This document shows positions 7,498 through 47,147 of a stretch of DNA of 64,000 bases, piece after piece (the stretch's first letter is position 1; the number at the start of each line of letters is the position of its first letter). Where the stretch lies: contig OZ037767.1 in NCBI GenBank assembly GCA_964035545.1, positions 29,776,628 through 29,840,627 of the forward strand, given 5' to 3'. A program made the translations under genes and the position numbers. This DNA comes from Bugula neritina (lineage: Eukaryota; Animalia; Bryozoa). Under the pieces are notes generated by a model that saw nothing but the letters and a program-made list of their open reading frames with translations, made no database searches and was not told the DNA's origin.

Positions 7498-7695
7498 ATT
7501 ATTATACACATATATAAAGTGTATAGCCTTTGAAACTATTCACTCTGTATATAATAAGGTTTAAACATTTACGGTGTTCAACGGATAAATTATAGACTGT
7601 TACATTGTATAATTCTGCAAATAAAACATTATACTCAATATTGTGCATATGTGATAAACTGCAAGAAGCACCAAACGCAGTATAGTTTTACTCAC

Positions 7696-9966
7696 CACCA
7701 AAGCTATCTTGTTCATGTAATAGTACTATAGTTCCTCCACTGTTTGTACCAGCTGATGTCAATGATGTGGCAGCAGTTTTTATGAGTTTGAATTTCCCAC
7801 GAGTTTCTAGGTCAGCATACCACTGTGGTTATGTAATACAAAAGGTCAGCAGCTTAACCCTTACGCGATCAATGGACCATATATGTCCCTGAAAGCGACA
7901 CTATCCACAGATCAATGGACCATATATGGTCTTTTAGGTAAATAAACGATAGCGCTTACTTTAAACTTCCAGTTTTCAACCGAAAAGCCTAAAAGTTTTT
8001 GTAATTGATGTTGATAGGGCAGCTTAGTAATTTTGGGATAATTAGAGCCCTTAAATCTGATTAAATTAATAGCTACCAAGCCAGCTAGTTGCTTTTCAAT
8101 TTAATCTCTAAATTTCAGAATTGTCGGTAAATATTAACGCTACTTTTAAATGCATGAAACTGCTGTCAAATCATAGAGAGCCAGTTTATTTTATTCAGAT
8201 TACATTTAGAAGAACATCTAAATAAACAGAAATGTTAAAGTCACTATATTTTGAATCATATTATAAATTAATTTTATCATTTTGAATTTTCAATTTTAAA
8301 ATGGCGGTTTTGAGAGGTCAAATTAAAATGACTTATTTTAGCTAGAATTGAGGTCTCCCGTCACTTTAAGAAGCTTTTTATAAAAGAAGATACTCTTAAA
8401 ATTATAATACCCAGTTTATTTAAAGCCAAAATCAAGTGTAACTTTTTAATAATGAAATTGAAAGTTAAGCAAAATTTGTTAGCAAATTTCGCGATAAACT
8501 CAAACGAGGCTTAAAATTACGTAACTTCAAAGTTGATCGCCAAAGGGTTAAATAACATGTGCACATGAATGAGCCGCCTATGAAAATTCATAGATGCATT
8601 TTTGTCTTTAAAATCAAACAGGTTCTTTGAATATGCTAAGTAAAAATTTTATTATATATTAATTTTGAAAAGATATAGCAAGCACTGGGCTAGTCAGCGA
8701 TTTAATTCCCAGTTTTGGCGATTGGTGGTGTTAGTAAGAGTAACCAGTCAAGAGTCAAAATTGCTGTCTTGTCACAATATAGGCATATCTGTGTGAGCTA
8801 AATGGATTTTTAGTATATTACATCATAAACTGTAAGATAAAAGTTTCACTAAATGAGAATTTAATGTAAAAAAAGAAGCAAATATTGAAAAGTGTGTCCT
8901 CATTCACGCTGTTTGAACACACATGAAGTTTTCCTTCTGCCTGCCAAGTGAAGCAGTGTTTATGCCAGCCATACAGTGTGTACATAGGTGTGTTGGTCAA
9001 CTTCATTCTGTATTTTCTTTTGATAGTCTCTCTTATTATATTGCGGCTGGTAAATCTTAAAGCAAACTCATTATCTTCACCTGCCAGGTAACACAAATAA
9101 AATTTTGTTTCTACTGCAGCCTCAAAATTATTCTAGTTATGAGTTGGGTATTATATCATATATAATTATAATGGAGCAATGAAATTACTGATTCAGTAGA
9201 AGCTAGCGAGGATGACCTTAATCATGTTGTGATTAGCTGCTCAAGTGTTAAATAATGTTTTTGTATTTTATGATGACAAATCTAAAACAATAAGATGTTT
9301 TAGATTATATTTTAAATGTTGAATATAAAAACAAACTTATATTAAATCAGATTACCTGGGACAGAAATAGAAAACAGGTATCTGCCAGTTTCAGTTGATA
9401 GGAAACCTTTAGAAAGCCAGAAACAGCAGGTAAAGTTTGAGAGTGCAGGTAAGTTTTCCTGGTATACATAATCAGTAGTAGATCTGTGTTGTGTGTATAC
9501 TGGGAGTTGCTTGCTCCTGCCACCTTTAGAACATAAATGTTAAGGTGTGTTGCTTAGCAGAATGTTGAGAGTTTTAGACTAATTTAGAAGTATTGAACAC
9601 TGAGTATCATATTTGAATATACAGTATTACAAACATATTACAAATTTATTGAAGCTGTTTAAAGTATATTACAGATATATTACAAAGATGCTGCAGGAAT
9701 AGTTAAAAATCAACTATTTTTTTAAAAACAATTTGCAAAGTCTAAAATTCAAAGGCAAAGTTTGCCAAAAACTGCTGTTGAAAGATTTTTGCAATACAAA
9801 TAATTAAAATGTCTACATATGAAATAACGTTTGGAACCTTACAGTTGGTATAGGGGTTGTATATAATAAAGTATTATATTATGTTATATTAAATACAGCA
9901 TGAACACTCACCTGAAATAAAGCCACAATTTGAGTAGAAAATAATCAAAGTGTGTAGAAAAAGCAT
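7696..9966 (-). CDS. Pentraxin-PAN/apple protein, copy 1 (type A); exons 1-4 only, remainder expected left of the BEL insertion outside the window
   Basis: Exons 9966-9912 (signal peptide MLFLHTLIIFYSNCGFIS), 9523-9356, 9080-8923, 7822-7696. GT-AG boundaries with consistent phases. Motifs FTCCFW, EDNEF, WHKHCFTWQ, LLHEQDSFG. Confidence 0.85.
7858..8547. mobile_element. piggyBac-type non-autonomous element (690 bp)
   Basis: TTAA on both sides (7854-7857, 8548-8551). Ends CCCTT...AAGGG with a 13/15 TIR match. Internal 19-bp direct repeat gatcaatggaccatatatg. The paralogous empty site cagcTTAAataacatg is at ~20281. Confidence 0.92.
8681..8800 (+). repeat. Degraded tRNA-SINE-like fossil in intron 3 (also ~12601-12712, ~20412-20530, ~25174-25285, ~31531-31655)
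   Basis: B-box-like GGTTTGATTCCC / GGCTCGAATCCC, followed by a segment resembling the GTCAGGAAGGGCATCC...AAATTGC body seen in invertebrate SINEs. Present and diverged in all five paralogs. It does not join the flanking exons in an open frame. Confidence 0.45.
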
Positions 9967-11233
9967 ATTCAGCGTTAAGCTGGTGCCTTCTTTATTAGAG
10001 ATGCACATATTTTGAAGCGCCTTCAAACTACATCTCAAGTTTTAACTAAACAACTGAAGAAAGTAATATATATATGTATATTAATATGTAGTATCAAAAA
10101 GATTATTGATTTCCAACATTTTTAATTTACTTATGCATATATATAATTTCTTCAACCTATAATTGCATCTATTTTATTGCCTTTTCTAATTAAGTTCATA
10201 AACAAAGACTCGTTTGTTAATATGCAGGTACTGGAAAGAAAAGAAATTTTACTGTCCATCACTTCTACAAGGCAAAGCTTTAAAGACATGTTTTATATCT
10301 GCAGCTAATAATTTAATTCATTAAGCAGATTAAGACCATTGGATGTGCGACTTAATATTCAAAGGTAGTTGGCAACTTAACAACTCATCAATTATTTTAT
10401 TATATATATTCAACTATATTACCAATAATACTTTATATTGAGTTTTCACTGTTGATGAGTAAAGGTATATAACACCTATATACCTATACGTAACTGTTAT
10501 TACATACCCTGTTTCATTATTTATAGCAGGAGCATCAAACAAACCTGCCAACACATTATCCAATTCAACTGGTTGAGTCAATATTCTGTTCAAACAATTC
10601 CCTGGTGACAGGTAATGACATGTGCTATAAAACCGTATTGTAAGCAAGCAAATTAAGTCAATATTAATATAATATTATTGCTTGAAAGTCAACAAACCTT
10701 TGTGTATTAATGTTATAAGCATTACCATGTATGATTGTAACATCTAAATTACTTATGTGTTTATATGTGATATACATATATATAATTAAATCTTAAATAA
10801 AACAGCACAAAAAGAAAAAAAAATTAATTGTATAAAGTGACAATCTTTTGAATAGCTGAAGCACTGAGCTAACCTAACAACAAAATTTCTATGGCACTAA
10901 TAGGTTATTGTCTTCTCCTGAAAACTTTTCAATATAAGACTTGCACTTAGGCCAAAGAGCCACAACTCTAATAAATGATGCATTCATTGTACATTGTGCA
11001 TTCATTACTTGCAGAAAAATCTTGCAGTGCTAACAAAACTTACAAAAAATAAAAAATATTCTACACAATAAAACCGGAACACGTTTTAAACTCGATATCC
11101 GATTTGCAAAAATTGTTCTTTACAGCATTTTTCTGCAATTAAACACAAAGAAATAAATAGACACAGATATTATACATATTATATAATGATTTATTAACTA
11201 TTACATCATACAGTCACTATATGCTGAGTATAA

Positions 11234-14200
11234 CTAAACAGTACAGTCTCTAGAAGTATAATGTACAGTATATTCTCCATATCCATCTGTTAGACTCACA
11301 TCATCTAGATCTGTGACATCATACAACTCACAACTTCCTGTTTGTATATCATAGTTTACTGACTGACAGAGACTACTGGATGTACAGATACGAATACACT
11401 GTGCAGCTGACTTTACAGTGTGAGTAGATACTGTGTGAGCATCTATTCTAGAACCTTCCACTTTACAGAACATCATTTGCTGACTGTCTCCTCTGTAGCT
11501 CTTTTGAAAAGCTACGGACTCTTTATCTAAAGGGAAGGCAAGTATACATGCAGTGTAACAGATACCTGCAAGCACCTGCAAGCACCTGCAACAGCTCATG
11601 AAAATAAAAATTTAGTCGGTTGATGATTTGCTTAATGCTTACTCATTATACTTGATAATTCATTTAAAAATCATGTCTTTTAGTCTTAAGCAGCTGCTTA
11701 ACTGAATACATCGAGTTCTTTATCTTCTTTGTTTGGCCTAATTATAGATTTCTTACAAAGTAATTGAATATTTATCTGAGTTTTTGAATGTTATAAAAAT
11801 CATTTTGTTTTTTAATACTGGCTTAGCACAGCTCACCATTGCAAGGAAAGTTTTCATAAATTATGTCAGCTTGACCCATAAACTTCAGAGTATCCCAGTT
11901 TATAACATTTCCTCTGTCATTACACCCCAACTCTTCTATTTCTGTCTCTGTTAGTACGTAGTCCCACATGTTGAATAAAGCAACTTTTCCTGGTACTGAC
12001 TGTATCAATTGTAAATCACCTTTTAAATTAAAAAGAGCACATAACTTCAAAGCATAACAAATAACAGTGATAAAATACCACAGGAACCATTTTATTATAC
12101 ATAATTATATAGGATATATAACCTTTTTAAACATCCATGCTCAGTACAAACTGATCGGTCATCAATATGATAATGCTTATACTATATGCAATGTTAAATG
12201 GGTTCATTATAAACTGTTATACTGTGTGCAAATAAAGCATTACTCAATATTGCATAACTAATATGAAATAGTGTCCAGAAAACACAAAGCTACATCAAGT
12301 AGCTTTACTCACCACCAAATTCATCTTGTTCATGTAATAGAATTATAGTTCCTCCACTGTTTATACCAGCTGATGCAAATAATGTGGCAGCAGTTTGTAT
12401 GAGCTTGAGTTTCCCACGAGTTTCTAGGTCAGCATACCACTGTGATTGAATAATATAAAAGTCTGCATTTTCAATAATATTATGTGAATGAGCATGCAAT
12501 TATGAACATTCTTAGTTGCAATTTGTTTGTCAATACCAAACATATTATCCTGCAAAAAGTTTCAAAGTTATATATATGTGTACCAATAAAGAGATTTAGG
12601 GAGCAATAGTCGAATTGAGTCAGTAGATCGAATTCCAGTAACTCGAGTTGTCAGAAAGAGTAATTAGTCAAAATTGCCTTTTGCCACAGTATAAACAAGT
12701 CCGTTTGAGTTAAATAAATTGAAAGTATATCAACTACAAAACTCTAAGTTATATTGACCGAGTATTTTAATATAAAAATATGACTGAATAGTTCAAAGTT
12801 AGTCTTCATTGCCCAGTATCTTCAAGCTGTTCAAACTCACGGCAAGTTTTCCTTCTGCCTGCCATGTGAAGCAGTGTTTATGCCAGCCATAGAGTGTGTA
12901 CATTGGTGTGTTGGTCAACTCCATTCTATATGTATTTCTGAGAGTCTCTTGTATATTGCCGTTGATGAAGCTTAAAGCAAACTCATTATCTTCACCTGCC
13001 AGGTAACAATATTAAAATTACACATACAATGCACTAATAATACAATAAAATTCAATAATAAAGTAATTATAAAATAAAAATTATACAATGCCAATAATAC
13101 CACACAACAATACAGTCCAATAAAATAATACAATAATGCAGTAATAAGACATACAATTATATAATATAACTGTATAATAAAATAACATTGTTAAGCAAAC
13201 TATGCTATAAACTAATAAAATAATATTACATAAAATCAAACAAACGATTTACTTGGCAGAGAAATAGTGAACAGAAATCTATCAACTGTCGTTGGCAAGT
13301 GACTTTTGGAGAGCCAGAAACAGCAGGTGAAGTTTGAGAGTGCAGGTAGATTTTCCTGGTATACATAATCAGTAATAGATCTGTGTTGTGTGTACACTGG
13401 GAGTTGCTTGCTCCTGCCACCTTTAGAACAACATTAGAATAACTAGCTTATAGTGGTAACTTGTATAATAGCTTGGTTTCATCCCAGATAGACGCTTCCC
13501 AGTTGGACGCTATTTTTTATTTTGGTACCATAATAATGTATATGCATTACCTGTTGTATTGATTGCTAAATAGCTAATACGCTTATATAATTATATATAA
13601 TAGCTAATATAAAGTGTTTGGAATAATAGCCTACTTTTCACTGATTTGTGTAGGGCAAAAAACAGTAATACATTAATAATAGACATTATTTTTAATGAAT
13701 ACTTATTAAAGAAATAGTTTTTTCAAACAAAAAGAAATATAGAATATGAAATAATTAAGTTAATGCAGAGCAAAGGAATTTATTTATGTGCTAGATAGCA
13801 AAGAATTGATCCAAGTTTATTTAAATATACATATATTTCAATAATATTCAAATAAGTTGCACATAAAATATATATTGTACCAAAATAAATAAATAGCGTC
13901 TAACTGGGAAGTGTCTACCTGTGATGACACCAATAGCTTGCGTAAATGAGAAGCAAGCACAGCACAGGTTTTATATTTATTTAAAGCAAAGCTATAAAAT
14001 AATGCTATTTGCTTTTAATAACAATTAGTTATATATACAAGCCTTGTTTAACAAGCTTTATTAATTAACATATTGTTTACATGGTTTTACAATAATCTAT
14101 ATATATTACATGATTCTATACATAATATATTTCATGGCTTTATAATATATTACATATATTTGATGATTCTATACATGATAATATGTCACATAATTATATA

Positions 14201-14300
14201 TATTACACCTTGCATTATACTGATAAAATAACATACCTGCAGTGTAATGACTAACACAAAGCTGCCAACTTATGTATAGAAACAGACAATATTTCGTCAT
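11234..14300 (-). CDS. Secreted pentraxin-PAN/apple protein, copy 2 (type B), ~329 aa
   Basis: Exons 14300-14237, 13420-13253, 12995-12841, 12439-12313, 12019-11837, 11526-11234 give a 990-nt open frame. Signal peptide MTKYCLFLYISWQLCVSHYTA. Pentraxin motifs HEQDEFGG, FNMWDYVL, GNVINW. PAN motif CIRIC...CQSVNY...CEL. Confidence 0.9.
13475..13931. mobile_element. MITE with ~55-bp TIRs and 8-bp TSD (Mutator/Merlin-like); second copy at 26051-26502
   Basis: GGTTTCATCCCAGATAGACGCTTCCCAGTTGGACGCTATT... is inverted at the right end. AATAGCTT is duplicated on both flanks. Found at the same site in intron 1 of both type-B genes. Confidence 0.85.
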
Positions 14301-14377
14301 CTTCAACTCAAAGTCTAAGTAGCAAAACCTGGTGGTCCAGTGAAGGCTGTAACTGTTATCTGGACAAACACTGTGCT

Positions 14378-14390
14378 GATTTATATGCTT
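14378..14390 (-). promoter_or_regulatory. Putative TATA box of type-B/mosaic pentraxin genes (also ~27110, ~32980)
   Basis: TATAAAT on the minus strand ~85 nt upstream of the ATG, conserved in three paralogs. Confidence 0.45.
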
Positions 14391-15132
14391 ATTATGACGT
14401 ATTGATTTTACTTATTTATAATATTATTGATTGATTCCTAGCAACTAATGCTTAATAAAACACTTGGATTATTATATTTTATCTGTTTGAATCTTTTGCA
14501 ATTTAGCTTTTAGCTAAGCAGAAAAATATTAAAAGATTTCTTTGATGACGCTGCTTTAATTATTACATTAAATCACTGTTTATTTCTATTATAATGACTA
14601 CTAGTAATGCACACTATAGTGAAACGTAGCAATAAAATTATAATTCTTGTCATCATTCCAGATAATTATTTAGTAGATGAAAGCATTGTATTTATAATCA
14701 ATATATTTTCATTTATTTTGTGAATGTTTATCAAGCATTTTTTTTATCATAAAACAAGACTCAATTTAAACATTTTAATTGCAATTTGTGAATCATATTA
14801 GAAAATTTTATTTACTGTTTTGGCAAATTAGACTTACTTTTCTAAACATTGCTATATTTACACTACTATAGTGAGAACTTTGTCTTCTGTTATTTGAGTT
14901 ATGATTGGAATTAGTTGAATAATTAGACTGTGGTCATAGATTTGCTAACATAAGTTATACGCCTTTGAATATATTATACACTGTTTATTAATAAATCCTT
15001 TAAAATTAAACATGAATAGTTTATATAATTGTATTATGCTATATATTATATTACTGTACATTATATTATATTACTGCACCAGTAGAATATAGCAGTCATG
15101 CATTTACCTTCATAATATTTAGTGTTTTCTGT

Positions 15133-15138
15133 AGCAGT

Positions 15139-15204
<66 letters not shown>

Positions 15205-15228
15205 AGCAGAAGCAAAAGCAGCAGCAGG
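15133..15228. repeat. (CAG)n microsatellite, unit 1
   Basis: 20 pure CAG (15141-15200) with an impure tail. Confidence 0.97.
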
Positions 15229-16179
15229 AGGATTATATTGATTACAATTTTAAAGACTAGCCAATTGTTTGTTTCTATTTTAGACGGATTGACATTACAT
15301 TGTTTTAGCATGCCAGAAATGGAAATAACACCGGATGCACTACCTATATGGACAGGATTTCTAAAATCGACTTTTCTAACAAGTCAAGCAATTCAATTAA
15401 AACAGTTTGAAGATAAAAAAGATTAAAGTAAATATGCAGCAATCAAAGTCACGGCTCAATTTAATCCAATATAGCTTTTGTAACCACATTTGTGACTTTT
15501 TTAAAAACAAGTATGGGCCATCTTATTGTCAAACCTAAAAACATAAATTTAACATAAGAAATAAGGCTACCTTGAAGCTATCAAAGAATAACACGAGTTT
15601 ATTTGAATAATTCCGAAATTATTGGCTTTACAGCCATGACTGTTTTAACTACAATTTCATTGAAATGAAAGTTGAGTTGATTAACTGTTTTTAACTGCTG
15701 AAGTTGAAGCTTACATCAAGCTAAAGATGAGCTATAAAAAGAGCTTTGTTATGTTTGAAGAGTATGTAGACTTTGAAGCCTTGCACATACAAGAAAACCT
15801 GAGCTATAGTGAATGACAAGAAAAGCTGCATAGATATATAGAAAGCCAGATAAAAAATATTAGATACGGGAGAGTAGAACAAAAACATTTACAACATACT
15901 ATAATTTATTAATTGTGTGTTCAAGTGTTACAACAGTGGGAAGAGCTATAACGACAGGCATAAGTATTAACCAATAAAAATAAAGTAGCAGCATTCACTA
16001 ATTAGTATTATGTTTAGCTAAATTTTGTGGTTATTTATAGTTGCTATACACAGCAAAATAGTTACGTCATTTTTTATAGACTTGATGAATGAATTGTTAA
16101 AGTTTTTCTTTCCTTTTCTTAAGATACTGTTTGATTGCTCTGTATTTTCTGGAGTATGTGTTGTTGACATTACATGAGA

Positions 16180-17688
16180 ATAGACCATGTAAAACTCAGC
16201 CAATCAGCGAAGTGTACCAGGTCAATGTCTTACCATTGTAACTGATATAAAATTCTGCAAGTTCAATTGCAAAATGCATGCTTCTAAAAGCTAGTTGTGC
16301 ATTTTTTTTTTCATGCATTATTTAATTTCATATCTTAAATTGATGACTCTTGAAATGATTTTTTAAAATGTCTAAATTAAGTGTTTATAAAACGCAATTA
16401 AAAATTGCATGTCTAGAAAAATGACCTGGTACACTTTTGCAACTTAAAGCCAATTATTACATAACTGCCAGCTTAGTAGTTATTTGTTGTTGCAGCTTGA
16501 ATGGGTTATTGTTTAGCATTGGAAGCTTGCAGTAAACATCTGTGAATTTGGTACATGACTTTGATTGGCTGGTTTTTGAATGGCCCTTTAGTATATGCAT
16601 CTGGATGGCTGGGTAGTGTAGACTCCGCCTACATCTAGCTAATGTACAGTAGCCAATCCACAGTAGTATTACAAAATTTCTGTTTAACAAATGAAATATT
16701 CTGGTCATTTGTTTTGTACTTTACAATAGTAAATATTCTATTCAACTAGAATTTTATTGTATGTAAGCCATGGGAACTACTAAGAGGTTAAATCAACCAC
16801 CCATGCTGGTAATATTGTAGCTCGCAGTAATAACAAGTCCACACCATATAAATATACACATAAGCTATTATGTGCAGCTTATGAATGCTGAAATGACCCC
16901 ATTTCTTACTTTCAATTTGAAAAAATTGTATTACATATTCTGCCACTTCTGCACCAGAAACTTGTTTTCCTTTTAAATTTTGAAAATAGTAGTCAGTTTC
17001 TATAGCAGTCAACATCCACAATAAACAACGTAAGCTTTCAAATAAACTATAAATATATGAAATATTGGTGTGGAAACAATGTAATTTATTCATTGCTATG
17101 ATGAAAAATTACAAGAATATTATATAAAAGCTAGATATAGATTTCTATAAAATGGCACAGGTAAAAATAACACATTTTTACTTCAAATTCTAAATTTCAT
17201 CAGTCACCAATGGTGGCTGTAGATTACAGAGAGCATAGCAGACTATCATAATCATAAGGATGGTCAGCCCACTGAGCAAAATCCAACTCCAACCTTTCAT
17301 TTGGGCTACCAACACACTAAAGCATATAATGTAAGACGCACAAAAAACAGTGGTTTTAATGAAACATGTGAAGGAAGCGAACAGAAAACGTCTTCAACAG
17401 AGTCAGCTGATATAGAGCAACAGAACTCATCTGACAGCCAGCCTCATAGTCAGACTTCATCAGAAGTAACTGAGTTACCAGAATCATCAACTACTCATAA
17501 AAAAAGATCTGCACATTCTATTGATAGACGAAAATCAAAAGTTGGAAGAAAAGGCTCAAAAAGTTCCACGTTTAAACAAAAAGCAACTATTGAAAAAGTA
17601 AAAGTTTTTAAAACTTTCACCACTACAGATGAGCAAACTAAATTCTATACTGGAATACCTACACGTTCTCTATACTATTTTTTAGCAA
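16180..17688 (+). pseudogene. Degenerate THAP + DDE_Tnp_4-type (ISL2EU/Harbinger group) transposase remnant
   Basis: Segment absent from units 2 and 3 (compare ~28840 and ~34885). Translates HKDGQPTEQNPTPTFHLGY (THAP C-terminal PT motif) and DEQTKFYTGIPT (FYTG motif preceding the transposase HTH). Truncated and frameshifted. Confidence 0.7.
16207..16440. mobile_element. Small inverted-repeat element nested in the transposase remnant
   Basis: Perfect 15-bp inverted repeat AAGTGTACCAGGTCA (16210-16224) / TGACCTGGTACACTT (16422-16436). Confidence 0.6.
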
Positions 17689-17799
17689 GCTATATGCATT
17701 AGCGTCTACTTGAATTATTATTTGTAACTTAATTGTCTCATCATTGTATTATATGCAAATATAAATCAAGTTGAAAGCTTTTGACTTTTGTAGCAGCTG

Positions 17800-19007: not shown

Positions 19008-21693
19008 CTAAACAGTACAGTCTCTAGAAGTATAGTGTACAGTATATTCTCCATATCCATCTGTTAGACTCACATCATCTAGATCTGTGACATCATACAA
19101 CTCACAACTTCCTGTTTGTATATCATAGTTTACTGACTGACAGAGACTACTGGATGTACAGATACGAATACACTGTGCTGCTGACTTTACAGTGTGAGTA
19201 GATACTGTGTGAGCATCTATTCTAGAACCTTCCACTTTACAGAACATCATTTGCTGACTGTCTTCTCTGTAGCTCTTTGGAAAAGCTACGGACTCTTTAT
19301 CTGAAATAAAGGCAAGCATACATGCACTGTAACAAGCACCTGCAAGCACCTGCAAGCACCTGCAAGCACCTGCAAGCACCTGCAAGCACCTGCAATAGCT
19401 CTGAAAGTACAAATTTCTGCAGCATTTAGTCAGTTGCAATCTGGAGTTCAAAAACAGTATTGGTTGTATTATTGAAGCTGAGATTTTGATGCTTCGCCTA
19501 CTCATTCTACTTGATAATTCATTTAAAAATCTTGCTTTGTTCTAGTCTTAAGCAGCTGCTTAACTAAATGCATTGGATTCTTTATATTATCTTACAAATT
19601 TCTTATCTGAGTTTTTGTCCTTTACAAAAATCATTTTGATTTTTAATAGTGACAGCACAGCTCACCATTACAAGGGAAGTCTTCATAAATTATGTCAGCT
19701 TGACCCATAAACTTCAGAGTATCCCAGTTTATAACATTCCCTCTGTCATTACACCCCAACTCTTGTATTTCTGTCTCTGTTAGTATGTAGTCCCACATGT
19801 TGAATAACGCTACTTTTCCTGGTACTGACTGTTTCAATTCTAAGTTACCTTATAAATGTAAAAAATGTACACTTTGAAATTACAATGACTAAAAGTAATA
19901 AACTACTACACTAAGGTGAATGCGCATAATTATTATACATGTATAAAGTGTATAGCCTTTGAAACTATTCACTCTGTATATAATAAGGTTTAAACATTTA
20001 CGGTGTTCAACGGATAAATTTTAAACTGTTACATTGTATAATTCTGCAAATAAAACATTATACCTAATATTGTGCATATATGTGATCAACTGCAAGAAGC
20101 ACCAAAAGCAGTATAGTTTTACTCACCACCAAAGCTATCTTGCTCATGTAGTAGTACTATAGTTCCTCCACTGTTTGTACCAGCTGATGTCAATGATGTG
20201 GCAGCAGTTTGTATGAGTTTGAGTTTCCCACGAGTTTCTAGGTCAGCATACCACTGTGGTTAAGTAATACATAAGGTTAGCAGCTTAAATAACATGTGAA
20301 TGAGCTGCCTATGAAAATTCATAGCTGCATTTTTGCCATTAAAATCAAACAGATTCTTTGAATATGCTTAGTAAAAATTTTATTATATATTAATTTTGAA
20401 TAGATATAGCAAGCACTGGCCTAGTCAGTGGTTTGATTCCCAGTTTTGGCGATTGGTGGTGTTAGTAAGGGTAACCAGTCGGCAGTCAAAATTGCTGTCT
20501 TGTCACAATATAGGCATATCTGTTTGAGCTAAATAGATTTTTAGTATATTACATCATAAACTGTAAGATAAAAGTTTCACTAAATGAGAATTTAATGTAA
20601 AAAAAGAAGCAAATATTGAAGAGTGTGTCCTCATTCACGCTGTTTGAACACACATGAAGTTTTCCTTCTGCCTGCCAAGTGAAGCAGTGTTTATGCCAGC
20701 CATACAGTGTGTACATAGGTGTGTTGGTCAACTCCATTCTGTATTTTCTTTTGATAGTCTCTCTTATTATATTGCGGCTAGTAAATCTTAAAGCAAACTC
20801 ATTATCTTCACCTGCCAGGTAACACAAATAAAATTTTGTTTCTACAGCCTCAAAATTATTTGAGTTATGAGTTGGGTATTATATCATATATAATTATAAT
20901 GGAGCAATGAAATTACTGATTCAGTAGAAGCGCGCTAGCGAGGATGACCTTAATCATGTTGTGATTAGCTGCTCAAATGTTAAATAATGTTTTCGTATTT
21001 TATGATGACGAATCTAAAACAATAAGTTGTATTAGATTATATTTTAAATGTTGAATATGAAAACAAACTTATATTAAATTAGATTACCTGGGACAGAAAT
21101 AGAAAACAGGTATCTGCCAGTTTTAGTTGATAGGAAACCTTTAGAAAGCCAGAAACAGCAGGTAAACTTTGAGAGTGCAGGTAAGTTTTCCTGGTATACA
21201 TAATCAGTAGTAGATCTGTGTTGTGTGTACACTGGGAGTTGCTTGCTCCTGCCACCTTTAGAACATAAATGCTAAGGTGTGTTGCTTAGAAGAATGTTAA
21301 AAGTTTTAGACTAATTTATAAGTATTGAACACTGAGTATCATATTTGAATATACAGTATTACAAACATATTACAAATTTATTGAAGCTGTTTAAAGTATA
21401 TTACAGATATATTACAAAGATGCTGCAGGAATAGTTAAAACTAAACTAATTTTTTAAAAAGAATTTGCAAAGTCTAAAATTCAAAGACAAAGTTTGCCAA
21501 AAACTGCTGTTGAAAGATTTTTGCAATACAAATAATTAAAATTTCTACATATAAAATAATGTTTGGAACCCTACAGTTTGTATATTTTTGTTGTATATTA
21601 TAATGAAGTATTATATTATATACAGCATAAAAACTTACCTGAAATAAAGCCACAATTTGAGTAGAAAATAATGAAAGTGTGTAGAATAAGCAT
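19008..21693 (-). CDS. Secreted pentraxin-PAN/apple protein, copy 3 (type A), ~327 aa
   Basis: Exons 21693-21639, 21255-21088, 20811-20654, 20253-20127, 19848-19666, 19300-19008 give a 984-nt open frame. LLHEQDSFGGNLELKQS...NMWDYIL parallels CRP LGQEQDSFGGNFEGSQS...NMWDFVL. Confidence 0.9.
19334..19395. repeat. 10-bp VNTR (GCACCTGCAA)n in intron 5; paralogous tracts ~11564-11591, ~23309-23345, ~30467-30514
   Basis: Directly visible: 3, 6, 4 and 5 CCTGCAA units in copies 2, 3, 4 and 5. Confidence 0.95.
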
Positions 21694-22491
21694 ATTCCGA
21701 ATTAAGCTGGTGCTTTCTTTATTAGAAATGCACATATTTTAAAGCATCTTCAAACTATATCTCAAGTTTTAACTAAACAACTGAAGAAAGTAATATGTAT
21801 ATGTATATTAATATGTAGTATTAAAAAGATTATTGATTTCCAACATTTGTAATTTACTTATGCATATATATAATTTCTTCAACCTATAATTGCATCTATT
21901 TTATTGCCTTTTCTAATTAAGTTCATAAACAAAGACTCGTTTGTTAATATGCAGGTACTGGAAAGAAAAGAAATTTTACTGTCCATCACTTCTACAAGGC
22001 AAAGCTTTAAAGACATGTTTTATATCTGCAGCTAATAGTTTAATTCATTAAGCAGATTAAAACCAATGAACATGCTACTTAACATTCAAAGGTAGTTGGC
22101 AATTTAACATCTCATCAATTATTTTATTATATATATTTGACTATATTAACAATAATACTTTATATTGAGTTTTCACTGTTGATAAGTAAAGGTATATAAC
22201 ACCTATACCTATACGTAACTGTTATTACATACCCTGTTTCATTATTTATAGCAGGAGCATCAAACAAACTTGCCAACACATTATCCAATTCAACTGGTTG
22301 AGTCAATATTCTGTTCAAACAATTCCCTGGTGACAGGTAATAACATGTGCTATAAAGCACATATTATAAGTAAGTGAAATGATTCAATATTAATATATTA
22401 TTGCTAATTGAAGGTCAACAAACCTTTGCGTATTGCTAGCATTACTGTGTATGATTGTAACATTTAAGCTTCTCACGTGTTTATGTTTTAT

Positions 22492-22523
<32 letters not shown>

Positions 22524-22977
22524 TTAAATCTTAAATAAAACAGCTGGAAAAGACAAAATAATTTGTTGCATAATATTTGTATAAAGTAACAATCTTCTTA
22601 ATAGCTGAATCATTGAGCTAACCTAACAACAAATCTTCTATGATACTAATAAGTTGTTGTCCTCTCCCGAAAATTTTCCAATGTATAAGACTTGCACTTA
22701 GGCCAAAAGGTCACAACTCCAACAACTGATGCATTGTACATTGTGCATTCATTACTTAAAAAATGAGCTTGCAGTGCTAACAAAACTTACAAAAATAAAA
22801 AATATACTACACAATAAAACCAGAACACATTTTAAACGCGATATTTAATTTGCAAAAATTGTTCTTTACAGCAATTTTCTGCAATTAAACACAAAGAATT
22901 AAATAGACACAAATATTATACATATTATATAATGATTTATTAACTATTACATCATACAGTCACTATACTGAGTATAA

Positions 22978-25900
22978 CTAAACAGTACAGTCTCTAGAAG
23001 TATAATGTACAGTATATTCTCCATATCCATCTGTTAGACTCACATCATCTAGATCTGTGACATCATACAACTCACAACTTCCTGTTTGTATATCATAGTT
23101 TACTGACTGACAGAGACTACTGGATGTACAGATACGAATACACTGTGCTGCTGACTTTACAGTGTGAGTAGATACTGTGTGAGCATCTATTCTAGAACCT
23201 TCCACTTTACAGAACATCATTTGCTGACTGTCTCCTCTGTAGCTCTTTGGAAAAGCTACGGACTCTTTATCTAAAGGGAAGGCAAGCATACATGCAGTTT
23301 AACAGATACCTGCAAGCACCTGCAAGCACCTGCAAGCACCTGCAATAGCTCATGAAAATAAAAATTTAGTGTTGATGATTTGCTTAATGCTTAAAGCCTG
23401 GCCACACGATCGTGAGAATCACACGAAATCGTCTATTTGACACGAAAAAACATTCGTACGAGAAAATTTGAGGGAATTCTAACGAAATCGTCATCGTTGT
23501 GTACACACAACGATGACGATGGACGAAAAATCACAATCCACGATAAGTACCATTTGATTGGTCAATAAAATTCTAGCAACAGTGATTATTTCATTTCTAC
23601 TACGTTTCTCTATATTTGGCAATTTTCTGCTGCTTGTATCTCGTGCAAGACTCTTTCATGGACTAATAAAAATGACTTGTTGCCACCAAAGTGGTATTTA
23701 TTAGGGGTATATATAGTATAAACGCCAAATATTTACTACAAATTTCAAAAATAGCATAAATTAAGTAGTATTACCATGCCTATTTGCATCCAATTACCTA
23801 GTCTTACATTTATAGCAGCTGTAATGTATTTTGCGTAAAATAGCTATTGCAAGCATTATTCAATTCATATTCACATTGTAATCACAGCTTAAACTTTATA
23901 GCTTTGTATTTACGTACATGAGTGAGTTTTAAATTTTTTTTAAAATTTTATATGCATAAAAAATGTGTTTAAAAATTTTACCAATAAACAAAACTAACAA
24001 GTGTACACATAAAATACCAAAAAAATAACAAAAATGGCAAAATCTTTCCTTTATAGTTTATAACTTATATAAACTTGCGGTACCAATTCTGGCATAAAGA
24101 CTTTTCGTCTAACGAGTGTGTGGCTGGTCAATACGAAAAGATAACTCACGAAAATAGTCACACGAGTTTCGTGTGATTCTCACGATCGTGTGGCCAGGCC
24201 TTTACTCATTATACTTGATAATTCATTTAAAAATCATGTTTTTTCAGTCTTAGGCAGCTGCTTAACTGAACACATTGAGTTCTTTATCTTCTTTGTTCAG
24301 CCTAATTATAGATTTCTTACAAAGTAATTGAATATTTATCTGAGTTTTTGAATGTTATAAGAATCTTTTTGTTTTTGTAATACTGGCCTAGCACAGCTCA
24401 CCATTGCAAGGAAAGTTTTCATAAATTATGTCAGCTTGACCCATAAACTTCAGAGTATCCCAGTTTATAACATTTCCTCTGTCATTACACCCCAACTGTT
24501 CTATTTCTGTCTCTGTTAGTACGTAGTCCCACATGTTGAATAACGCTACTTTTCCTGGTACTGACTGTATCAATTGTAAATCACCTTTTAAATTAAAAAG
24601 AGCACATAACTTCAAAGCATAACAAATAACAGTGATAAAATACCACAGGAACCTGAATGTGCATTTTATTATACATAATTATATATAATTTCCAACCTTT
24701 TTAAACATTCATACTCAGTACAAACTGATCGGTCATCAATATGATAATGCTTATACTATATGCAGTGTTAAATGGGTCCATTATAAACTGTTATACTGTG
24801 TGCAAATAAAGCATTACTCAATATTGCATAATTAATATGTAATAGTGTCCAGGAAACACAAAGCTACATCAAGTAGCTTTACTCACCACCAAATTCATCT
24901 TGTTCATGTAATAGAATTATAGTTCCTCCACTGTTTATACCAGCTGATGCAAATAATGTGGCAGCAGTTTGTATGAGCTTGAGTTTCCCACGAGTTTCTA
25001 GGTCAGCATACCACTGTGATTGAATAATATAAAAGTCTGCATTTTCAATAATATTATGTGAATGAGCATGCAATTATGAACATTCTTAGTTGCAACTTGT
25101 TTGTCAATACCAAACATATTATCCTGCAAAAAGTTTCAAAGTTATATATATGTGTACCAATAAAGAGATTTAGGGAGCAATAGTCGAATTGAGTCAGTAG
25201 ATCGAATTCCAGTAACTCGAGTTGTCAGAAAGAGTAATTAGTCGAAATTGCCTTTTGCCACAGTATAAACAAGTCCGTTTGAGTTAAATAAATTGAAAGT
25301 ATATCAACTACAAAACTTTAAGTTATATTGACCGAGTATTTTAATATAAAAATATGACTGAATAGTTCAAAGTTAGTCTTCATTGCCCAGTATCTTCAAG
25401 CTGTTCAAACTCACGGCAAGTTTTCCTTCTGCCTGCCATGTGAAGCAGTGTTTATGCCAGCCATAGAGTGTGTACATTGGTGTGTTGGTCAACTCCATTC
25501 TATATGTATTTCTGAGAGTCTCTTGTATATTGCTGTTAATAAAGCTTAAAGCAAACTCATTATCTTCACCTGCCAGGTAATACGATTAAAATTACAGGTA
25601 TTCACTGCAACAATAATACAACACAATTTAATAATAGAGTAATTACAAAATAAAAATTATACAATGCCAATAATACCATACAACAATACAGTCCAATAAG
25701 ATAATACAATAATGCAGCAATAAGACATACAATTATATAATATAACTGTATAATAAAATAACATTGTTAAGCAAACTATGCTATAAACTAAGAAAATAAT
25801 ATTACATAAAATCAAACAAACGATTTACTTGGCAGAGAAATTGTGAACAGAAATCTATCAACTGTCGTTGGCAAGTGACTTTTGGAGAGCCAGAAACAGC

Positions 25901-27029
25901 AGGTAAAGTTTGAGAGTGCAGGTAGATTTTCCTGGTATACATAATCAGTAATAGATCTGTGTTGTGTGTATACTGGGAGTTGCTTACTCCTGCCACCTTT
26001 AGAACAACATTAGAATAACTAGCTTATAGTGTTGACTCGTATAATAGCTTGGTTTCATCCCAGATAGACGCTTCCCAGTTGGACGCTATTTTTTATTTTG
26101 GTACCATAATGATATATATACATTAACCGTTGTATTGATTGCTAAATAGCTAATATGCTTATATAATTATAATAGCTAATATAAAGTATTTGGAATAATA
26201 GCCTACTTTCACTGATTTGTGTGGGGCAAAAAACAGTAATACATTAATAACAGACATTATTTTTAATGAATACTTATTAAAGAAACAGTTATTTCAAACA
26301 ACAAGAAATATAGAATATGAAATAATTAAGTTAATGCAGAGCAAAGGAATTTATTTATGTGCTAAATAGCAAAGAATTGATCCAAGTTCATTTAAATATG
26401 CATATATTTCAACAATTTTTAAATAAATTGCACATAAAATATATATTGTACCAAAATAAATAAATAGCGTTTAACTGGGAAGTGTCTATCTGGGATGACA
26501 CCAATAGCTTGAGTAAATGAGAAGCAAGCACAGCACAGGTTTTATATTTATTTAAAGCAAAGCTATAAAATAATGCTATTTGCTTTTAATAACAATTAGT
26601 TATATATACAAGCCTTGTTTAACAAGCTTTATTAATTAACATATTATTTTACATAGTTTTACAATAATCTATATATTACATGATTCTATACATAATATAT
26701 TTCATGGCTTTATAATATATTACATATTTGATGATTCTATATATGGTATGTCACATATTAGTTATATATACAAGCTTTGTTTAACAAGCACTATTAATTA
26801 ACATATTATTTTACATGGTTTTACAATAATCTATATATTACATGATTCTATATACACAATATATTTCATGGTTCTATAATATATTACATATTTGATGATT
26901 CTATATATGATATGTCACATAATTCTATATATTAAACCTTGCATTATACTGATAAAATAACATACCTGCAGTGTAACGAATAACACAAAGCTGCCAGCAT
27001 ATGTATAGAAACAGACAGTATTTCAACAT
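22978..27029 (-). CDS. Secreted pentraxin-PAN/apple protein, copy 4 (type B), ~329 aa
   Basis: Exons 27029-26966, 25996-25829, 25569-25415, 25013-24887, 24584-24402, 23270-22978. Same exon lengths and phases as copy 2. Confidence 0.9.
23394..24201. mobile_element. PIF/Harbinger-type MITE (808 bp)
   Basis: 35-bp TIR A(A/G)GCCTGGCCACACGATCGTGAGAATCACACGAAA with one mismatch and a TTA TSD. The empty site aatgcTTActc is at ~11635 in copy 2. Confidence 0.93.
26051..26502. mobile_element. MITE, paralog of 13475-13931
   Basis: Same TIRs and AATAGCTT TSD. Confidence 0.85.
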
Positions 27030-27859
27030 TTTCAACTCAATCTCTGAGCAGCTGTTACCTGCTGTTTCGGCTGAGGGCTGTAGCTGTTATCTGGGCTAGC
27101 ATTGTGCTGATTTATATGCTTATTATGACGTATTGATTTACTTATTTATAATATTATTGAGTGATTCCTAGCAACTAATGCTTAATAAAACACTTAGATT
27201 ATTATATTTTATCTGTTTGAATCTTTTGCAATTTAGCTTTTAGCTAAGCAGGAAAATACTAAAAGATTTCTTTGATGACGCTGCTTTAATTATTACATTA
27301 AATCACTGTTTATTTCTATTATAATGACTACTAGTAATGCATACTATAATGAAACGTAGCAATAAAATTATAATTCTTGTCATCATTCCAGATAATTATT
27401 TAGTAGATGAAAGCATTGTATTTATAATCGATATATTTTCATTTATTTTGTGAATGTTTATCAAGCATTATTTTTATTATAAAACAAGACTCAATTCAAA
27501 CCTTTTAATTGCAATTTGTGAATCATATTAGAAAATGTTATTTACTGTTTTGGCAAATTAGACTTACTTTTCTAAACATTGCTATATTTACACTACTATA
27601 GTGAGAACTTTGTCTTCCGTTATTTGAGCTATGATACAAATTAATTGAATGATTAGACGGTGGTCCTAGATTTGCTAACATAAATTATAAGCCTTTGAAT
27701 ATATTATACACTGTTTATTAATAAATCCTTTAAAATTAAACATGAATAGTTTATATTGTATTATGCTATATGTTATATTACTGTACATTATATTATTATG
27801 ATGCACCAGTAGAATATAGCAGTCATGCATTTACCTTCATAATATTTAGTGTTTTCTGT

Positions 27860-27861
<2 letters not shown>

Positions 27862-27900
<39 letters not shown>
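27862..27900. repeat. (CAG)13 microsatellite, unit 2
   Basis: Directly visible. Confidence 0.97.
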
Positions 27901-27903
<3 letters not shown>

Positions 27904-28964
27904 CAATATATTGATTATAGTTTTAAAGACTAGCCAATTGTTTGTTTCTATTTTAGACGGATTGACATTACATTGTTTTAGCATGCCAGAAATGGAAATA
28001 ACACCGGATGCACTACCTATATAGACAGGATTTCTAGAATCGACTTTTTTAACAAGTCAAGCAATTCAATTAAAATAGTTTGAAGATAAAAAAGAACAAA
28101 GTAAATATGCAGCAATCAAAGTCACGGCTCAATTTAATCCAATATAGCTTTTGTAACCACATTTGTGACTTTTTTTAAAAACGAGTATGGGCCATCTTAT
28201 TCTCAAACCTAAAAACATAAATTTAACATAAGAAATCAGGCTACCTTGAAGCTATCAAAGAATAACAGAGTTTATTTGAATAATTCCGAAATTATTGGCT
28301 TTACAGCCATGACTGTTTTAACTATAATTTCATAGCTGGCATTGAAATGAAAGTTGAGTTAATACTGTTTTTAACTGCTGAAGTTGAAGCTTACATCAAA
28401 GTAAAGATGAGCTATAAAAAGAGCTTTGTTATGTTTGAAGAGTATGTAGACTTTGAAATCTTGCACATACAAGAAAACCTGAGCTAGTGAATGGCAAGAA
28501 AAGCTGCATAGATATATAGAAAGCCAGCTAAAAAATATTAGATACGGGAGAGTAGAACAAAAACATTTACAACATACTATAATTTATTAATTGTTTGTTC
28601 AAGTGTTACAACAGTGGGAAGCGCTATAACAACAGGCATAAGTATCAACCAATAAAAATAAAGTAGCAGCATTCACTAATTAGTATTATTTTTAGCTAAA
28701 TTTTGTGGTTACACAGCAAAATAGTTACATTATTTTCTATAGACTTGATGAATGAATTATTAGAGTTTTTCTTTCCTTTTTTTAAAATACTGGTTGAATG
28801 CTCTGTATTTTCTGGAGTATGCATTGTTGACACTACATGAGAGTTGCTATATGCATTAGCATCTACGTAAATTATTTCAGTATACTTGTCTTGTAACTTT
28901 TTTCATCATTGTATTATATGCAAATATATATCAAGTTAAAAGCTTTTGACTTTTGTAGCAGCTG

Positions 28965-29699: not shown

Positions 29700-30136
29700 C
29701 TTAGCAATATATTGCATATATAAATATGAGTGTATAATTTTCACCATGCTAATTTTTTAAGTTATCAAAGCAACTGCTAGTATACAAATGCGCATGTAGT
29801 TCGATCAATTTTTCTTATTAATATAAGCTTTAAGTTTATAAATACAAACGTATATGTCACAAAACCAAGGCTTATATTGATAAACATTGCTATGAAATTC
29901 TATTTCATAAATCGGAAATGGTTTTCTCAAAACAGCAAAAAAATCATAAAAAGTACTATAATGAATCCAAAACATGCTTTCAACATGAAATCCAATTTGA
30001 AAAAAATATGGATTAAATTGTTATTTACATCAATTTTCTGCAATTAAACACAAAGAAACTATAAATAGACGCAAATATTATAACTATGCAATGATTTATT
30101 AACTATTACATCATACAGTTACTATGCTGAGTATAA

Positions 30137-32900
30137 CTAAACAGTACAGTCTCTAGAAGTATAATGTACAGCATGTTCTCCATATCCATCTGTTAGACTC
30201 ACATCATCTAGATCTGTGACATCATACAACTCACAACTTCCTGTTTGCATATCATAGTTTGCTGACTGACAGAGACTACTGGATGTACAGATACGAATAC
30301 ACTGTGCTGCTGACTTTACAGTGTGAGTAGATACTGTGTGAGCATCTATTCTAGAACCTTCCACTTTACAGAACATCATTTGCTGACTGTCTCCTCTGTA
30401 GCTCTTTGGGAAAGCTACAGACTCTTTATCTGAAATAAAGGCAAGCATGCATGCACTGTAACAAGTACCTGCAAGCACCTGCAAGCACCTGCAAGCACCT
30501 GCAAGCACCTGCAATAGCTCTGAAAGTACAAATTTCTGCAGCATTTAGTCAGTTGCAATCTGGAGTTCAAAAACAGTATTGGTTGTATTATTGAAGCTGA
30601 GATTTTGATGCTTCGCCTACTCATTCTACTTGATAATTCATTTAAAAATCTTGCTTTGTTCTAGTCTTAAGCAGCTGCTTAACTTAATGCATTGGATTCT
30701 TTATATTCTCTTACAAAGTAATTGAGTTTTTATCTGAGTTTTTGACCGTTACAAAAATCATTTTGATTTTTAATGACAGCACAGCTCACCATTACAAGGA
30801 AAGTTTTCATAAATTATGTCAGCTTGACCCATAAACTTCAGAGTATCCCAGTTTATAACATTCCCTCTGTCATTACACCCCAACTCTTGTATTTCTGTCT
30901 CTGTTAGTATGTAGTCCCACATGTTGAATAACGCAACTTTTCCTGGTACTGATTGTTTCAATTCTAAGTTACCTTATAAATGTAAAAAATGTACACTTTG
31001 AAATTACAATGACTAAAAGTAATAAACTACTACACTAAGGTGAATGCGCATAATTATTATACATATATAAAGTGTATAGCTTTTGAAACTATTCACTCTG
31101 TATATAATAAGGTTTAAACATTTACGGTGTTCAACGGATAAATTATAGACTGTTACATTTTATAATTCTGCAAATAAAACATTATACTCAATAATGTGAA
31201 TATGTGATAAACTGCAAAAAGCACCAAAAGCAGTATTGTTTTACTCACCACCAAAGCTATCTTGTTCATGTAGTAGTACTATAGTTCCTCCACTGTTTGT
31301 ACCAGCTGATGTCAATGCTGTGGCAGCAGTTTTTACGAGTTTGAGTTTTCCACGAGTTTCCAGGTCAGCGTACCACTGTGGTTAAGTAACACAAAAGGTC
31401 AGCAGCATAAATAATATGTGAATGAGCAGCTTATGAACATTCATAGCTGCATTTTTGTAATTATAATCAAACAGATTCTCTGATTACACATAGTAATCAT
31501 TATTTTATATGGTAACTTTAAAAAAATTCAGCATGCACTGGCCTAATATCAATGGCTCGAATCCCAGTAATGGCCATTGCTGATGTCCGCAAGGTTAACG
31601 AATCAGCAGTCAAAATTGCCGTTTTGCCACAATATAAACAGGTCTGTTTGAGCTAAATGGATTGTTAGTATATTACATCATCAACTATAAGACTAAAGTT
31701 TCTCTAAATGAGAATTTAATATAAAAAGAGTGAATAGTGAAAAGTGAATAGTTTGTCTTCATTCAAGCTGTTCAAACTCACATCAAGATTTCCTTCTGCC
31801 TGCCAAGTGAAGCAGTGTTTATGCCAGCCATAAAGTGTGTACATTGGTGTGTTGGTCAACTCAACTCTATATGTATTTTTGAGAGTCTCTCTTATATTGC
31901 CGTTGATGAAGCTTAAAGAAAACTCATTATCTTCACCTGCCAGGTAACACAATTAAAATTACACATACAGTAAAACAATAATACAATACAATTTAATAAT
32001 ACAATAATTATAAAAAAACTATACAGTGACAATAATATCATACACCAATAAGATAATAAAATAACACAGTAATAAAACATACAGTAATATAATATAACTG
32101 TATAATAAAACAATAATATGAAAACTTAAACTATATGCAATAAAGTGATAAAATAATACTGTATAAAATCAACAAACAACCAACAAACAATTTACCTGAC
32201 ACTGAAACAGAGAACAGAAATCTTTCATTTGGCATTGGCAAGTAACCTTTGGAGAGCCAGAAACAGCAGGTGAAGTTTAAAAGTGCAGGTAAGTTTTCCT
32301 GGTAGATATAATCAGTAATAGATCTGTGTTGTGTGTACACTGGGAGTTGCTTGCTCCTGCCACCTTTAGAAAACCGGTAAAATAAATGTTAAATGTTATG
32401 TTAAGTCATATATAATTGTTATTGCAATAACAACCTGAGTAAATGACAAGCAAGTGCAGCACTGGTTATATTTTATTTAAAGCAAATATATTTAAGTTAT
32501 ATAAAAATAATTCGATTTCAATAACAAAGTTATTATACATGCCTTGTTTGTCATGTTCTATTAATATCTATTACATGGTTCTACATATTATATTATACTA
32601 CATGGCTCTACATATTATATTATACTACATGGTTCTACATATTATATTATATTACATGGTTCTACATATTATATTATATTACATGGTTCTACATATTATA
32701 TTACACTACATGGTTCTACATATTATATTATACTACATGGTTCTACATATTATATATTACATTGTTTATATATGCATACATATTATATATTACATGGCTA
32801 TATATATAATTTATATATACGGATAAAATAACATACCTGCAGTGTAAGGAATAACACAAAGCTGCCAGCTTATGTATAGAAACAGACAATATTTCAACAT
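30137..32900 (-). CDS. Secreted pentraxin-PAN/apple protein, copy 5 (mosaic: B-like 5' half, A-like 3' half), ~329 aa
   Basis: Exons 32900-32837, 32363-32196, 31936-31782, 31375-31249, 30972-30790, 30429-30137. Open frame. Confidence 0.9.
32570..32800. repeat. 24-bp minisatellite (tattacatggttctacatattata)n in intron 1 of copy 5
   Basis: About nine tandem units. Explains the spurious repetitive ORF 32443-32826. Confidence 0.9.

Positions 32901-33789: not shown

Positions 33790-33921
<132 letters not shown>

Positions 33922-34975: not shown

Positions 34976-47147
<12,172 letters not shown>

Follow-up and report, generated by a model that had tools for sequence, protein, structure and literature searches.

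In the bryozoan Bugula neritina nine intact genes, each of which joins a pentraxin domain to a PAN/apple domain, stand in tandem at about 29.754-29.810 Mb of the chromosome sequence G000:C3, and the amino acid differences among them are concentrated in two patches of the pentraxin domain, one of which matches the region of the ligand pocket in C-reactive protein (CRP). The window analysed, a stretch of 64,000 nucleotides, contains five of these genes (c1-c5). The other four (p1-p4) were found by a whole-assembly search before the window start, the array running 22 kb further that way, and what an earlier, sequence-only reading of the window took for a family of five is a family of nine. Our interpretation, which we hold to be probable rather than firm, is of a variable recognition surface on a conserved calcium-lectin scaffold with a constant PAN module, maintained by recombination and gene conversion. 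All nine copies keep intact open reading frames (ORFs), and in a profile search with exon 5 they were the sole top matches (139-152 bits), the next best pentraxin exons elsewhere in the genome reaching 88 bits at most. Three more distant exon-5-like pentraxin matches stand in tandem on another chromosome (G000:C7:3,899,940-3,910,736; 64-88 bits).

The five copies in the window lie on the minus strand with AG/GT at each of their junctions; their intron phases are 1,1,0,1,1, and their exons 2-6 read through without a stop. Each gene consists of a signal-peptide exon, four pentraxin exons (2-5) and a PAN/apple exon (6), and the encoded protein of a signal peptide of 18-21 amino acids, the pentraxin domain, a short variable linker and a nearly invariant PAN/apple domain. 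The signal-peptide exon sits 270-1030 bp upstream of exon 2, with a fitting phase and a consensus donor site, and comes mainly as MLILHTFIIFYSNCGFIS, in the type A copies as well as p3 and p4 (p1 having a related form), or as MLKYCLFLYISWQLCV..YTA, in the B copies, p2 and c5. Logan contigs from RNA-type runs of the same organism cover exons and not introns; one, found in two runs, carries the splice of exon 5 with exon 6 in c4, precisely at 24402|23270, and another carries that of exon 3 with exon 4 in c3, at 20654|20253. Two B. neritina proteins in GenBank, KAF6030105.1 and KAF6024822.1, which carry the automatic name ‘NPTXR’, have the same exon joins, the B-type exon 1 included; the GenBank proteins are 85-90% identical to the B-type window copies. 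That the PAN ORF might form a gene apart, with a signal peptide of its own, was ruled out by the intron phases, the exon 5-6 contigs and the GenBank joins. RNA-derived contigs over 19008-24584 also show a linker variant, KESMPFVKRHAR, and an exon-3 end variant, KVGKKLA. Contigs that carry such variant sequence come from alleles or paralogs absent from this assembly, and other individuals therefore hold further alleles or paralogs of the family.

What sort of protein is it? Searches used single exons or the database proteins P0137, P0136 and P0025, joined sequences being employed for local alignment and codon analysis only, and the fold models are of database relatives (P0137, P0025) of the window copies. 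Exon 5 of c5 alone matches Pfam Pentaxin (PF00354) at 30.6 bits (cut-off 25), while P0137 and P0136, two annotated members of the family from Bugula with 85-90% identity to the window copies of type B, do so at 75.3 and 72.5 bits; a full-length member gives 6.6e-21 for Pentaxin and 3.5e-9 for PAN_1. Exon 6 matches PAN/apple (PF00024) at 40.2-40.8 bits (cut-off 21.4), with six cysteines in the PAN exon of every copy. In exon-by-exon profile searches against PDB sequences exon 3 had no match, and exon 2 had weak matches to NPTX only (E 0.15). A phmmer alignment relates P0137 to human CRP with an E value of 1e-11. Its AlphaFold2 (AF2) model, with a mean predicted local distance difference test (pLDDT) of 74.6, matches CRP (1gnh) with Z 22.6 and 2.4 A over 194 residues, serum amyloid P component (SAP) with Z 23.5 and NPTX2 with Z 23.8, the matches to CRP, SAP and NPTX overall having a root-mean-square deviation of 2.2-2.5 A over about 193 residues. 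P0025, a relative of 330 amino acids with a like two-domain layout, has a TM-score (template modelling score) of 0.75 against CRP. The models of these relatives show a flattened beta-jellyroll superimposable on CRP and SAP and, judged by the Pfam match and by the fold match of the models, the family members are pentraxins. The classical pentraxin signature is H-x-C-x-[ST]-W-x-[ST]. The array copies, which read W-H-K-H-C-F-T-W-Q-A, do not carry it: they agree with it at C, T and W, have the His displaced by one position and end on A, G or V where it has S or T.

The ligands of the double Ca2+ site of CRP are D60, N61, E138, Q139, D140, E147 and Q150 (PMC6503050). Against CRP residues 133-164 the calcium-ligand columns of the copies are gapless and conserved, EQD at 138-140 and the equivalent of Q150 being invariant in nine of nine and the equivalent of E147 being E, D, Q or N. 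DNE (60-62) is kept in six of the nine.

On this scaffold the variation is far from evenly spread. In the five window copies 57 of 309 aligned residues vary, and they include 24 of the 37 patch columns as compared with 33 of the 272 others (Fisher p = 1.5e-11). The sequence-only reading was right that divergence is concentrated in the two patches, at the end of exon 2 and the start of exon 3, but its two-patch picture is incomplete, as 58% of the variable columns fall outside both. Smaller variable clusters in these five copies occupy the last part of exon 3, the middle of exon 4 and the beginning of exon 5. With nine copies the patches stand out even more, exon 3 being by far the most variable part (42-46% identity between types), and there is extra variation where exon 3 ends, in the exon-4 loop, over the nine codons that open exon 5 and in the pentraxin-PAN linker. 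This exon-5 stretch is the equivalent of the calcium loop at CRP 145-152, with an apparent omega (the dN/dS ratio of nonsynonymous to synonymous rates) of about 2 in a five-segment analysis. Hypervariable starts are seen in exon 5 (e.g. 19848-19822, 12019-11993) and, with the linker, in exon 6 (e.g. 19300-19262). Little or nothing varies in the block TNTPMYTLYGWHKHCFTWQAEG or over the first two-thirds of exon 2, in keeping with the almost invariant flanks described from the window sequence. The peptides quoted in that description are all present verbatim in the exons named, with the second A copy reading GFLSTKTG where the first reads GFLSTETG, and its outer limits are exact, 8923 being the last base of c1 exon 3 and 32363 the first base of c5 exon 2. 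It had also called the type A exon-3 patch strongly basic, which the net charge of +5/+7 bears out; B, c5, p3 and p4 carry 0 to +2 there, and p1 and p2 carry -1. The patch indels are all in frame, and the differences between KAF6030105.1 and KAF6024822.1 cluster in the very same columns.

Where do the patches lie on the fold? The exon-3 patch spans strands E, F and G, straight after the D60-N61-E62 motif. A CRP in the functional sense binds phosphocholine in a calcium-dependent manner and is a cyclic oligomer of 20-30 kDa subunits, and its phosphocholine pocket residues are F66, T76 and E81 (PMC6503050). All three are borne by strands E-F-G, and the patch therefore belongs to the sheet on which CRP carries its ligand pocket; at the level of the region, the proposed match to the pocket holds. 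Columns 62, 64 and 66 are fixed as hydrophobic, and 63, 65 and 67 are variable, which is the pattern expected of a strand with one exposed face; generally, the buried alternating hydrophobic positions and the calcium ligands are fixed, and the exposed E-F-G positions and the adjoining loops change. For single residues matters are less tidy. The sequence-only reading had placed R (type A) or S (type B and c5) at the position of F66, and the ungapped and hmmalign alignments do so, but the phmmer alignment of P0137 has a conserved F/Y/V there. Among the copies the ungapped F66 position is R, S, G, Y or H and the ungapped E81 position a conserved R or H, with the alignments disagreeing by 1-3 residues, the extent by which the equivalents of T76 and E81 shift between them. 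Because four alignments disagree, residue-exact transfer of T76 and E81 was dropped; aligning exon fragments together with full-length relatives was likewise rejected, as it misplaced the exon-3 patch. In the AF2 model strands D-E-F-G form a meander, which would put the D-E and F-G turns on the edge with the calcium site, and hence the C-D loop (exon 2) and the E-F turn on the opposite edge.

The history of the array differs along the length of the gene. Divergence between types A and B drops from 5′ to 3′: introns 1 and 2 are unalignable (about 45-48% mismatches), introns 3, 4 and 5 differ by 30%, 33% and 19%, exon 6 by 1.4% and the 3′ flank by 7%. Copy c5 is a mosaic, B-like in exon 2, intron 2 and the exon-3 patch, and A-like from mid exon 3 onward; its intron 2 is 16% from B and 49% from A, its intron 3 is 18.5% from A and 30% from B, and its intron 4 is 4.3% from A and 38% from B. 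Copies p3 and p4 share exon 2 and 1.7 kb upstream with type A at about 83-87% identity, and have exons 3-5 very different from A. The A-type exon 2 is accordingly joined to either of two exon-3 types that differ greatly, and the patch types of exon 2 and exon 3 are variously combined. Trees for segments are discordant, c5 and p3/p4 moving between clades, and synonymous depth is 1.21 for conserved exon 2, 1.62 for the exon-2 patch, 1.51 for the exon-3 patch, 0.98 for the rest of exon 3, 1.22 for exon 4 with the exon 5 start, 0.38 for the rest of exon 5 and 0.18 for exon 6. Discordant genealogies together with segments of far lower silent divergence are what gene conversion or concerted evolution leaves behind. 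The near identity of the 3′ part (exon 5 for the most part, exon 6 and the 3′ flank) points to its being kept so by gene conversion or unequal crossing-over, and the 5′ part holds old, deeply diverged segments that have been re-assorted by recombination in intron 2 and inside exon 3. Within exons 2-3 the synonymous depth is roughly uniform, and therefore the patches differ from the invariant blocks in constraint and not in age. Homogenisation sets the 3′ half apart from the 5′ half, amino acid constraint the patches from the blocks in exons 2-3. The sequence-only reading had kept in reserve the possibility that the patches are simply unconverted old sequence. This is not enough, with patch synonymous depth only about 1.3-1.5 times that of the flanks, and nonsynonymous depth 4-6 fold.

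Are the patches driven to differ, or just allowed to? Goldman-Yang codon likelihood was used with synonymous-time branch lengths and a separate tree per segment for the nine copies; recombination within segments, the number of sequences (nine) and alignment doubt between the most diverged types limit what all the selection tests can say. Under model M0 omega is 0.17 in conserved exon 2, 0.53 in the exon-2 patch, 0.90 in the exon-3 patch, 0.39 in the rest of exon 3, 0.37 in exon 4 with the exon 5 start, 0.34 in the rest of exon 5 and 0.35 in exon 6. The 0.90 is indistinguishable from 1 (twice the log-likelihood difference, 2dlnL, 0.1). Constraint on the patches is weaker than on the remaining protein by a factor of three to five, and they change at a roughly neutral rate. 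By the Nei-Gojobori method, omega between A and B is 0.48 for the exon-2 patch and 0.64 for the exon-3 patch; between B and c5 the exon-2 patch has 12 replacements to 1 silent change (omega 4.6) and the exon-3 patch 5 to 1, between p3 and p4 the exon-3 patch has 6 to 1, and the conserved blocks have omega 0-0.2 with dS 0.2-0.36. Relative to intron-2 divergence, patch dN is 1.15 for c2-c5, 0.83 for p2-c2, 1.1 for p2-c5, 0.64 for c1-c3 and 0.16 for c2-c4, and the young pairs c1-c3 and c2-c4 show no replacement excess. The diversifying selection on ligand specificity that the sequence-only reading proposed, and for which it had itself named a dN/dS in the patches above the neutral intron rate as the test, does not emerge at the level of the patches. 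A patch omega of 1.5-2 from a single tree, apparently significant (2dlnL 20-22), was discarded as an artefact of the mosaic structure, being gone with segment trees.

At the level of single codons there is something more. Mixtures of site classes on per-site likelihood grids favour M2a over M1a in the nine copies. With five segments 2dlnL is 19.8, with 4.4% of codons at omega 4 (columns 46, 73, 155 and 193); with seven segments, the patches having their own trees, it is 9.3, with 1.7% of codons at omega 5 and posterior probabilities of 0.99 for column 73 and 0.70 for column 46. As a check for inflation of the likelihood ratio test by fixed branch lengths, 17 replicates of a parametric bootstrap under M1a, run through the same pipeline, reached 2.9 at most, and p for the signal is about 0.01 or less. 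Among the nine copies column 73 has undergone five changes or more. Positive selection at a few exposed positions is plausible, the case for faster-than-neutral change at one or two exposed codons being modest and fragile, and selection for diversity in the patches is no more than suggested.

The main rival to a variable recognition surface is that the patches are weakly constrained surface loops and exposed strand positions that drift at the mutation rate in redundant paralogs, with no adaptive meaning. We consider this possible, if on the unlikely side, and it has in its favour the patch omegas that do not exceed 1, the dN that spans 0.16-1.15 of intron-2 K, the unremarkable young pairs and the vanishing of the single-tree signal. 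Drift does not sit easily, however, with the preference for M2a (2dlnL 9.3-19.8 where the bootstrap null is 2.9 at most), the repeated change at column 73, the 12 replacements to 1 silent change between B and c5 in the exon-2 patch, the in-frame indels in nine intact ORFs, the large, type-specific shifts of charge, and the GenBank pair whose differences fall in the same columns. A minor rival, which we regard as quite improbable, would have part of the variation tune which subunits form rings, as homo- or hetero-oligomers, instead of ligand choice, the candidate regions being the C-D loop in exon 2, the E-F turn and the variable loop of exon 4. In CRP, residues 40-42 contact the 115-123 loop of the neighbouring protomer. 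The modelled meander would put the C-D loop (39-46) and the E-F turn (68-71) on the edge opposite the calcium-ligand turn; the 115-123 loop is named as intersubunit in PMC10594506; and Limulus CRP consists of three gene products with identical ends (PMC6503050). Against such tuning, the most variable columns, 65, 73 and 78, are on the sheet face and in the F-G turn near the calcium site, and not on that edge.

Several points weigh against a variable recognition surface on a calcium-lectin scaffold and need to be kept in view. Relaxed constraint alone can explain most of the pattern, patch-level omega not being above 1 nor patch dN above intron divergence. The site signal comes from nine recombining paralogs with small segments and fixed branch lengths, and is cut by half once each patch has a tree of its own. 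Instead of DNE, p1 has SNE and p3 and p4 have SDE, and some copies may therefore bind calcium differently; on the model, the exon-2 loop is probably at a sheet edge far from the calcium site. The spliced contigs, too, derive from variants that differ from the assembled copies. On the recognition-surface interpretation the proteins would be calcium-dependent recognition lectins whose recognition surface varies on a constant scaffold; different patch types, the strongly basic type A included, would give different ligand preferences, and the constant PAN module may contact a shared partner or mediate assembly. A bolder extension, which we think doubtful, is a cassette system in which half-sites on either side of intron 2, one the exon-2 loop with strand D and the other the exon-3 strands E-G, would be shuffled between paralogs by recombination in intron 2 and inside exon 3, with conversion keeping the PAN ‘effector’ constant. 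If that were true, and subunits mixed in rings as in Limulus CRP, the nine genes could yield a much larger combinatorial repertoire of specificities.

Several mobile elements and repeats have settled in and around the genes of the window (Table 1). The ORF of the BEL/Pao element has Peptidase_A17 (1e-47), DUF5641 and DUF1759 domains. Because this retrotransposon occupies its intron 4, stretched thereby to about 8.3 kb, c1 looks truncated inside the window; that it is a truncated pseudogene was ruled out, exons 5-6 being intact across the intron, outside the window. Homology between c1 and the other copies stops at about 7497, and an insertion of about 700 bp in c1 intron 3 (7860-8550) is absent in all other copies. 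A Ty3/gypsy-type long terminal repeat (LTR) retrotransposon at 42197-46933 has 314-bp LTRs that are 99.4% identical and a 1347-aa ORF with protease, reverse transcriptase, RNase H and integrase domains. The insert in c4 intron 5 that resembles a miniature inverted-repeat transposable element (MITE) is covered very deeply by contigs from RNA-type runs, and therefore belongs to a repeat family that is abundant or transcribed. In the spacers upstream of B-type copies there are a (GCA)44 run and other CAG/CTG runs like it (33790-33922, about 15100-15310 and about 27830-27980), and c5 intron 1 has 6.8 copies of a 27-bp repeat (32572-32755). A 133-aa ORF on the plus strand in the c2-c3 spacer (17301-17702) has no Pfam match; the stretch is missing from the c4-c5 spacer and unique in the window, and the ORF may therefore be mobile or spurious.

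Table 1. Features of the window and secondary-structure elements of the modelled relative (positions are those of the window, unless a prefix or the word columns is given)
Feature	Position	Strand	Remarks
Window	G000:C3:29,776,628-29,840,627		AT-rich animal DNA
BEL/Pao LTR retrotransposon ORF	746..6700	+	1984 aa, uninterrupted; in c1 intron 4, antisense to gene
c1 (type A)	7696..9966	-	AG/GT at every junction, intact reading frame
c1 exons 1-4	9966-9912 (exon 1, signal peptide), 9523-9356, 9080-8923, 7822-7696
c1 exons 5-6	L034:7883-8062 and 7287-7574		before window start
c1 patches	9407-9356 (exon 2), 9063-9010 (exon 3)
c2 (type B)	11234..14300	-
c2 exons 1-4	14300-14237, 13420-13253, 12995-12841, 12439-12313
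c2 exons 5-6	12019-11837, 11526-11234		exon 6, PAN
c2 patches	13304-13253 (exon 2), 12978-12928 (exon 3)
c3 (type A)	19008..21693	-
c3 exons 1-4	21693-21639, 21255-21088, 20811-20654, 20253-20127
c3 exons 5-6	19848-19666, 19300-19008
c3 patches	21139-21088 (exon 2), 20794-20741 (exon 3)
c4 (type B)	22978..27029	-
c4 exons 1-4	27029-26966, 25996-25829, 25569-25415, 25013-24887
c4 exons 5-6	24584-24402, 23270-22978
c4 patches	25880-25829 (exon 2), 25552-25502 (exon 3)
MITE-like insert	23393-24202		810 bp; in c4 intron 5; 36-nt terminal inverted repeats
c5 (mosaic)	30137..32900	-
c5 exons 1-4	32900-32837, 32363-32196, 31936-31782, 31375-31249
c5 exons 5-6	30972-30790, 30429-30137
c5 patches	32247-32196 (exon 2), 31919-31869 (exon 3)
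C-D loop	columns 39-46		AF2 model of P0137
Strand D	columns 47-54		AF2 model of P0137
D-E turn	columns 55-57		AF2 model of P0137
Strand E	columns 58-67		AF2 model of P0137
E-F turn	columns 68-71		AF2 model of P0137
Strand F	columns 70-77		AF2 model of P0137
F-G turn	columns 78-79		AF2 model of P0137
Strand G	columns 80-83		AF2 model of P0137

How does the array compare with what is known elsewhere? With CRP and SAP (1B09/1GNH, 1SAC) and NPTX1/2 its copies share the fold, both cysteines of the C36-C97 disulfide and the NMWD motif, and with CRP in particular the invariant E138-Q139-D140 and Q150 and, in six of nine, D60-N61. Unlike CRP, SAP and NPTX, they add a C-terminal PAN/apple domain and keep the signature only in part (HKHCFTWQA); unlike CRP, they are longer by 2-3 residues from E62 to C97 and by about 8 in the exon-4 loop, and the candidate equivalents of the phosphocholine pocket residues are variable or of another kind. 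The vertebrate CRP gene has two exons; the array genes are multi-exon, the pentraxin part having five coding exons. Another parallel is the CRP of Limulus polyphemus, a multigene family whose products share identical N- and C-terminal stretches and differ in mid-molecule (PMC6503050), just as the array genes are alike at their ends and different in the middle, though the Limulus proteins are without a PAN domain and have phosphocholine as a known ligand. That review (PMC6503050) describes neither the gene layout nor a mosaic or conversion pattern. The pattern of variable patches is familiar from families of recognition genes.

A search of the available literature turned up no paper on bryozoan pentraxins, on pentraxin-PAN proteins or on such re-assortment; what may be new is that bryozoans have a pentraxin-PAN architecture and that segments are re-assorted across intron 2 in a cassette-like way. 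There is a lesson of method, in that a standard single-tree dN/dS analysis would wrongly report strong positive selection at this array. Bryozoan innate immunity is almost undescribed, and these genes are known in GenBank only by automatic names such as ‘NPTXR’. The locus offers a compact, testable case of a conserved calcium-lectin scaffold with a constant partner domain and a variable recognition sheet, and its natural variants, A, B, c5, p3/p4 and p1, are ready material for asking which positions of the sheet set ligand specificity.

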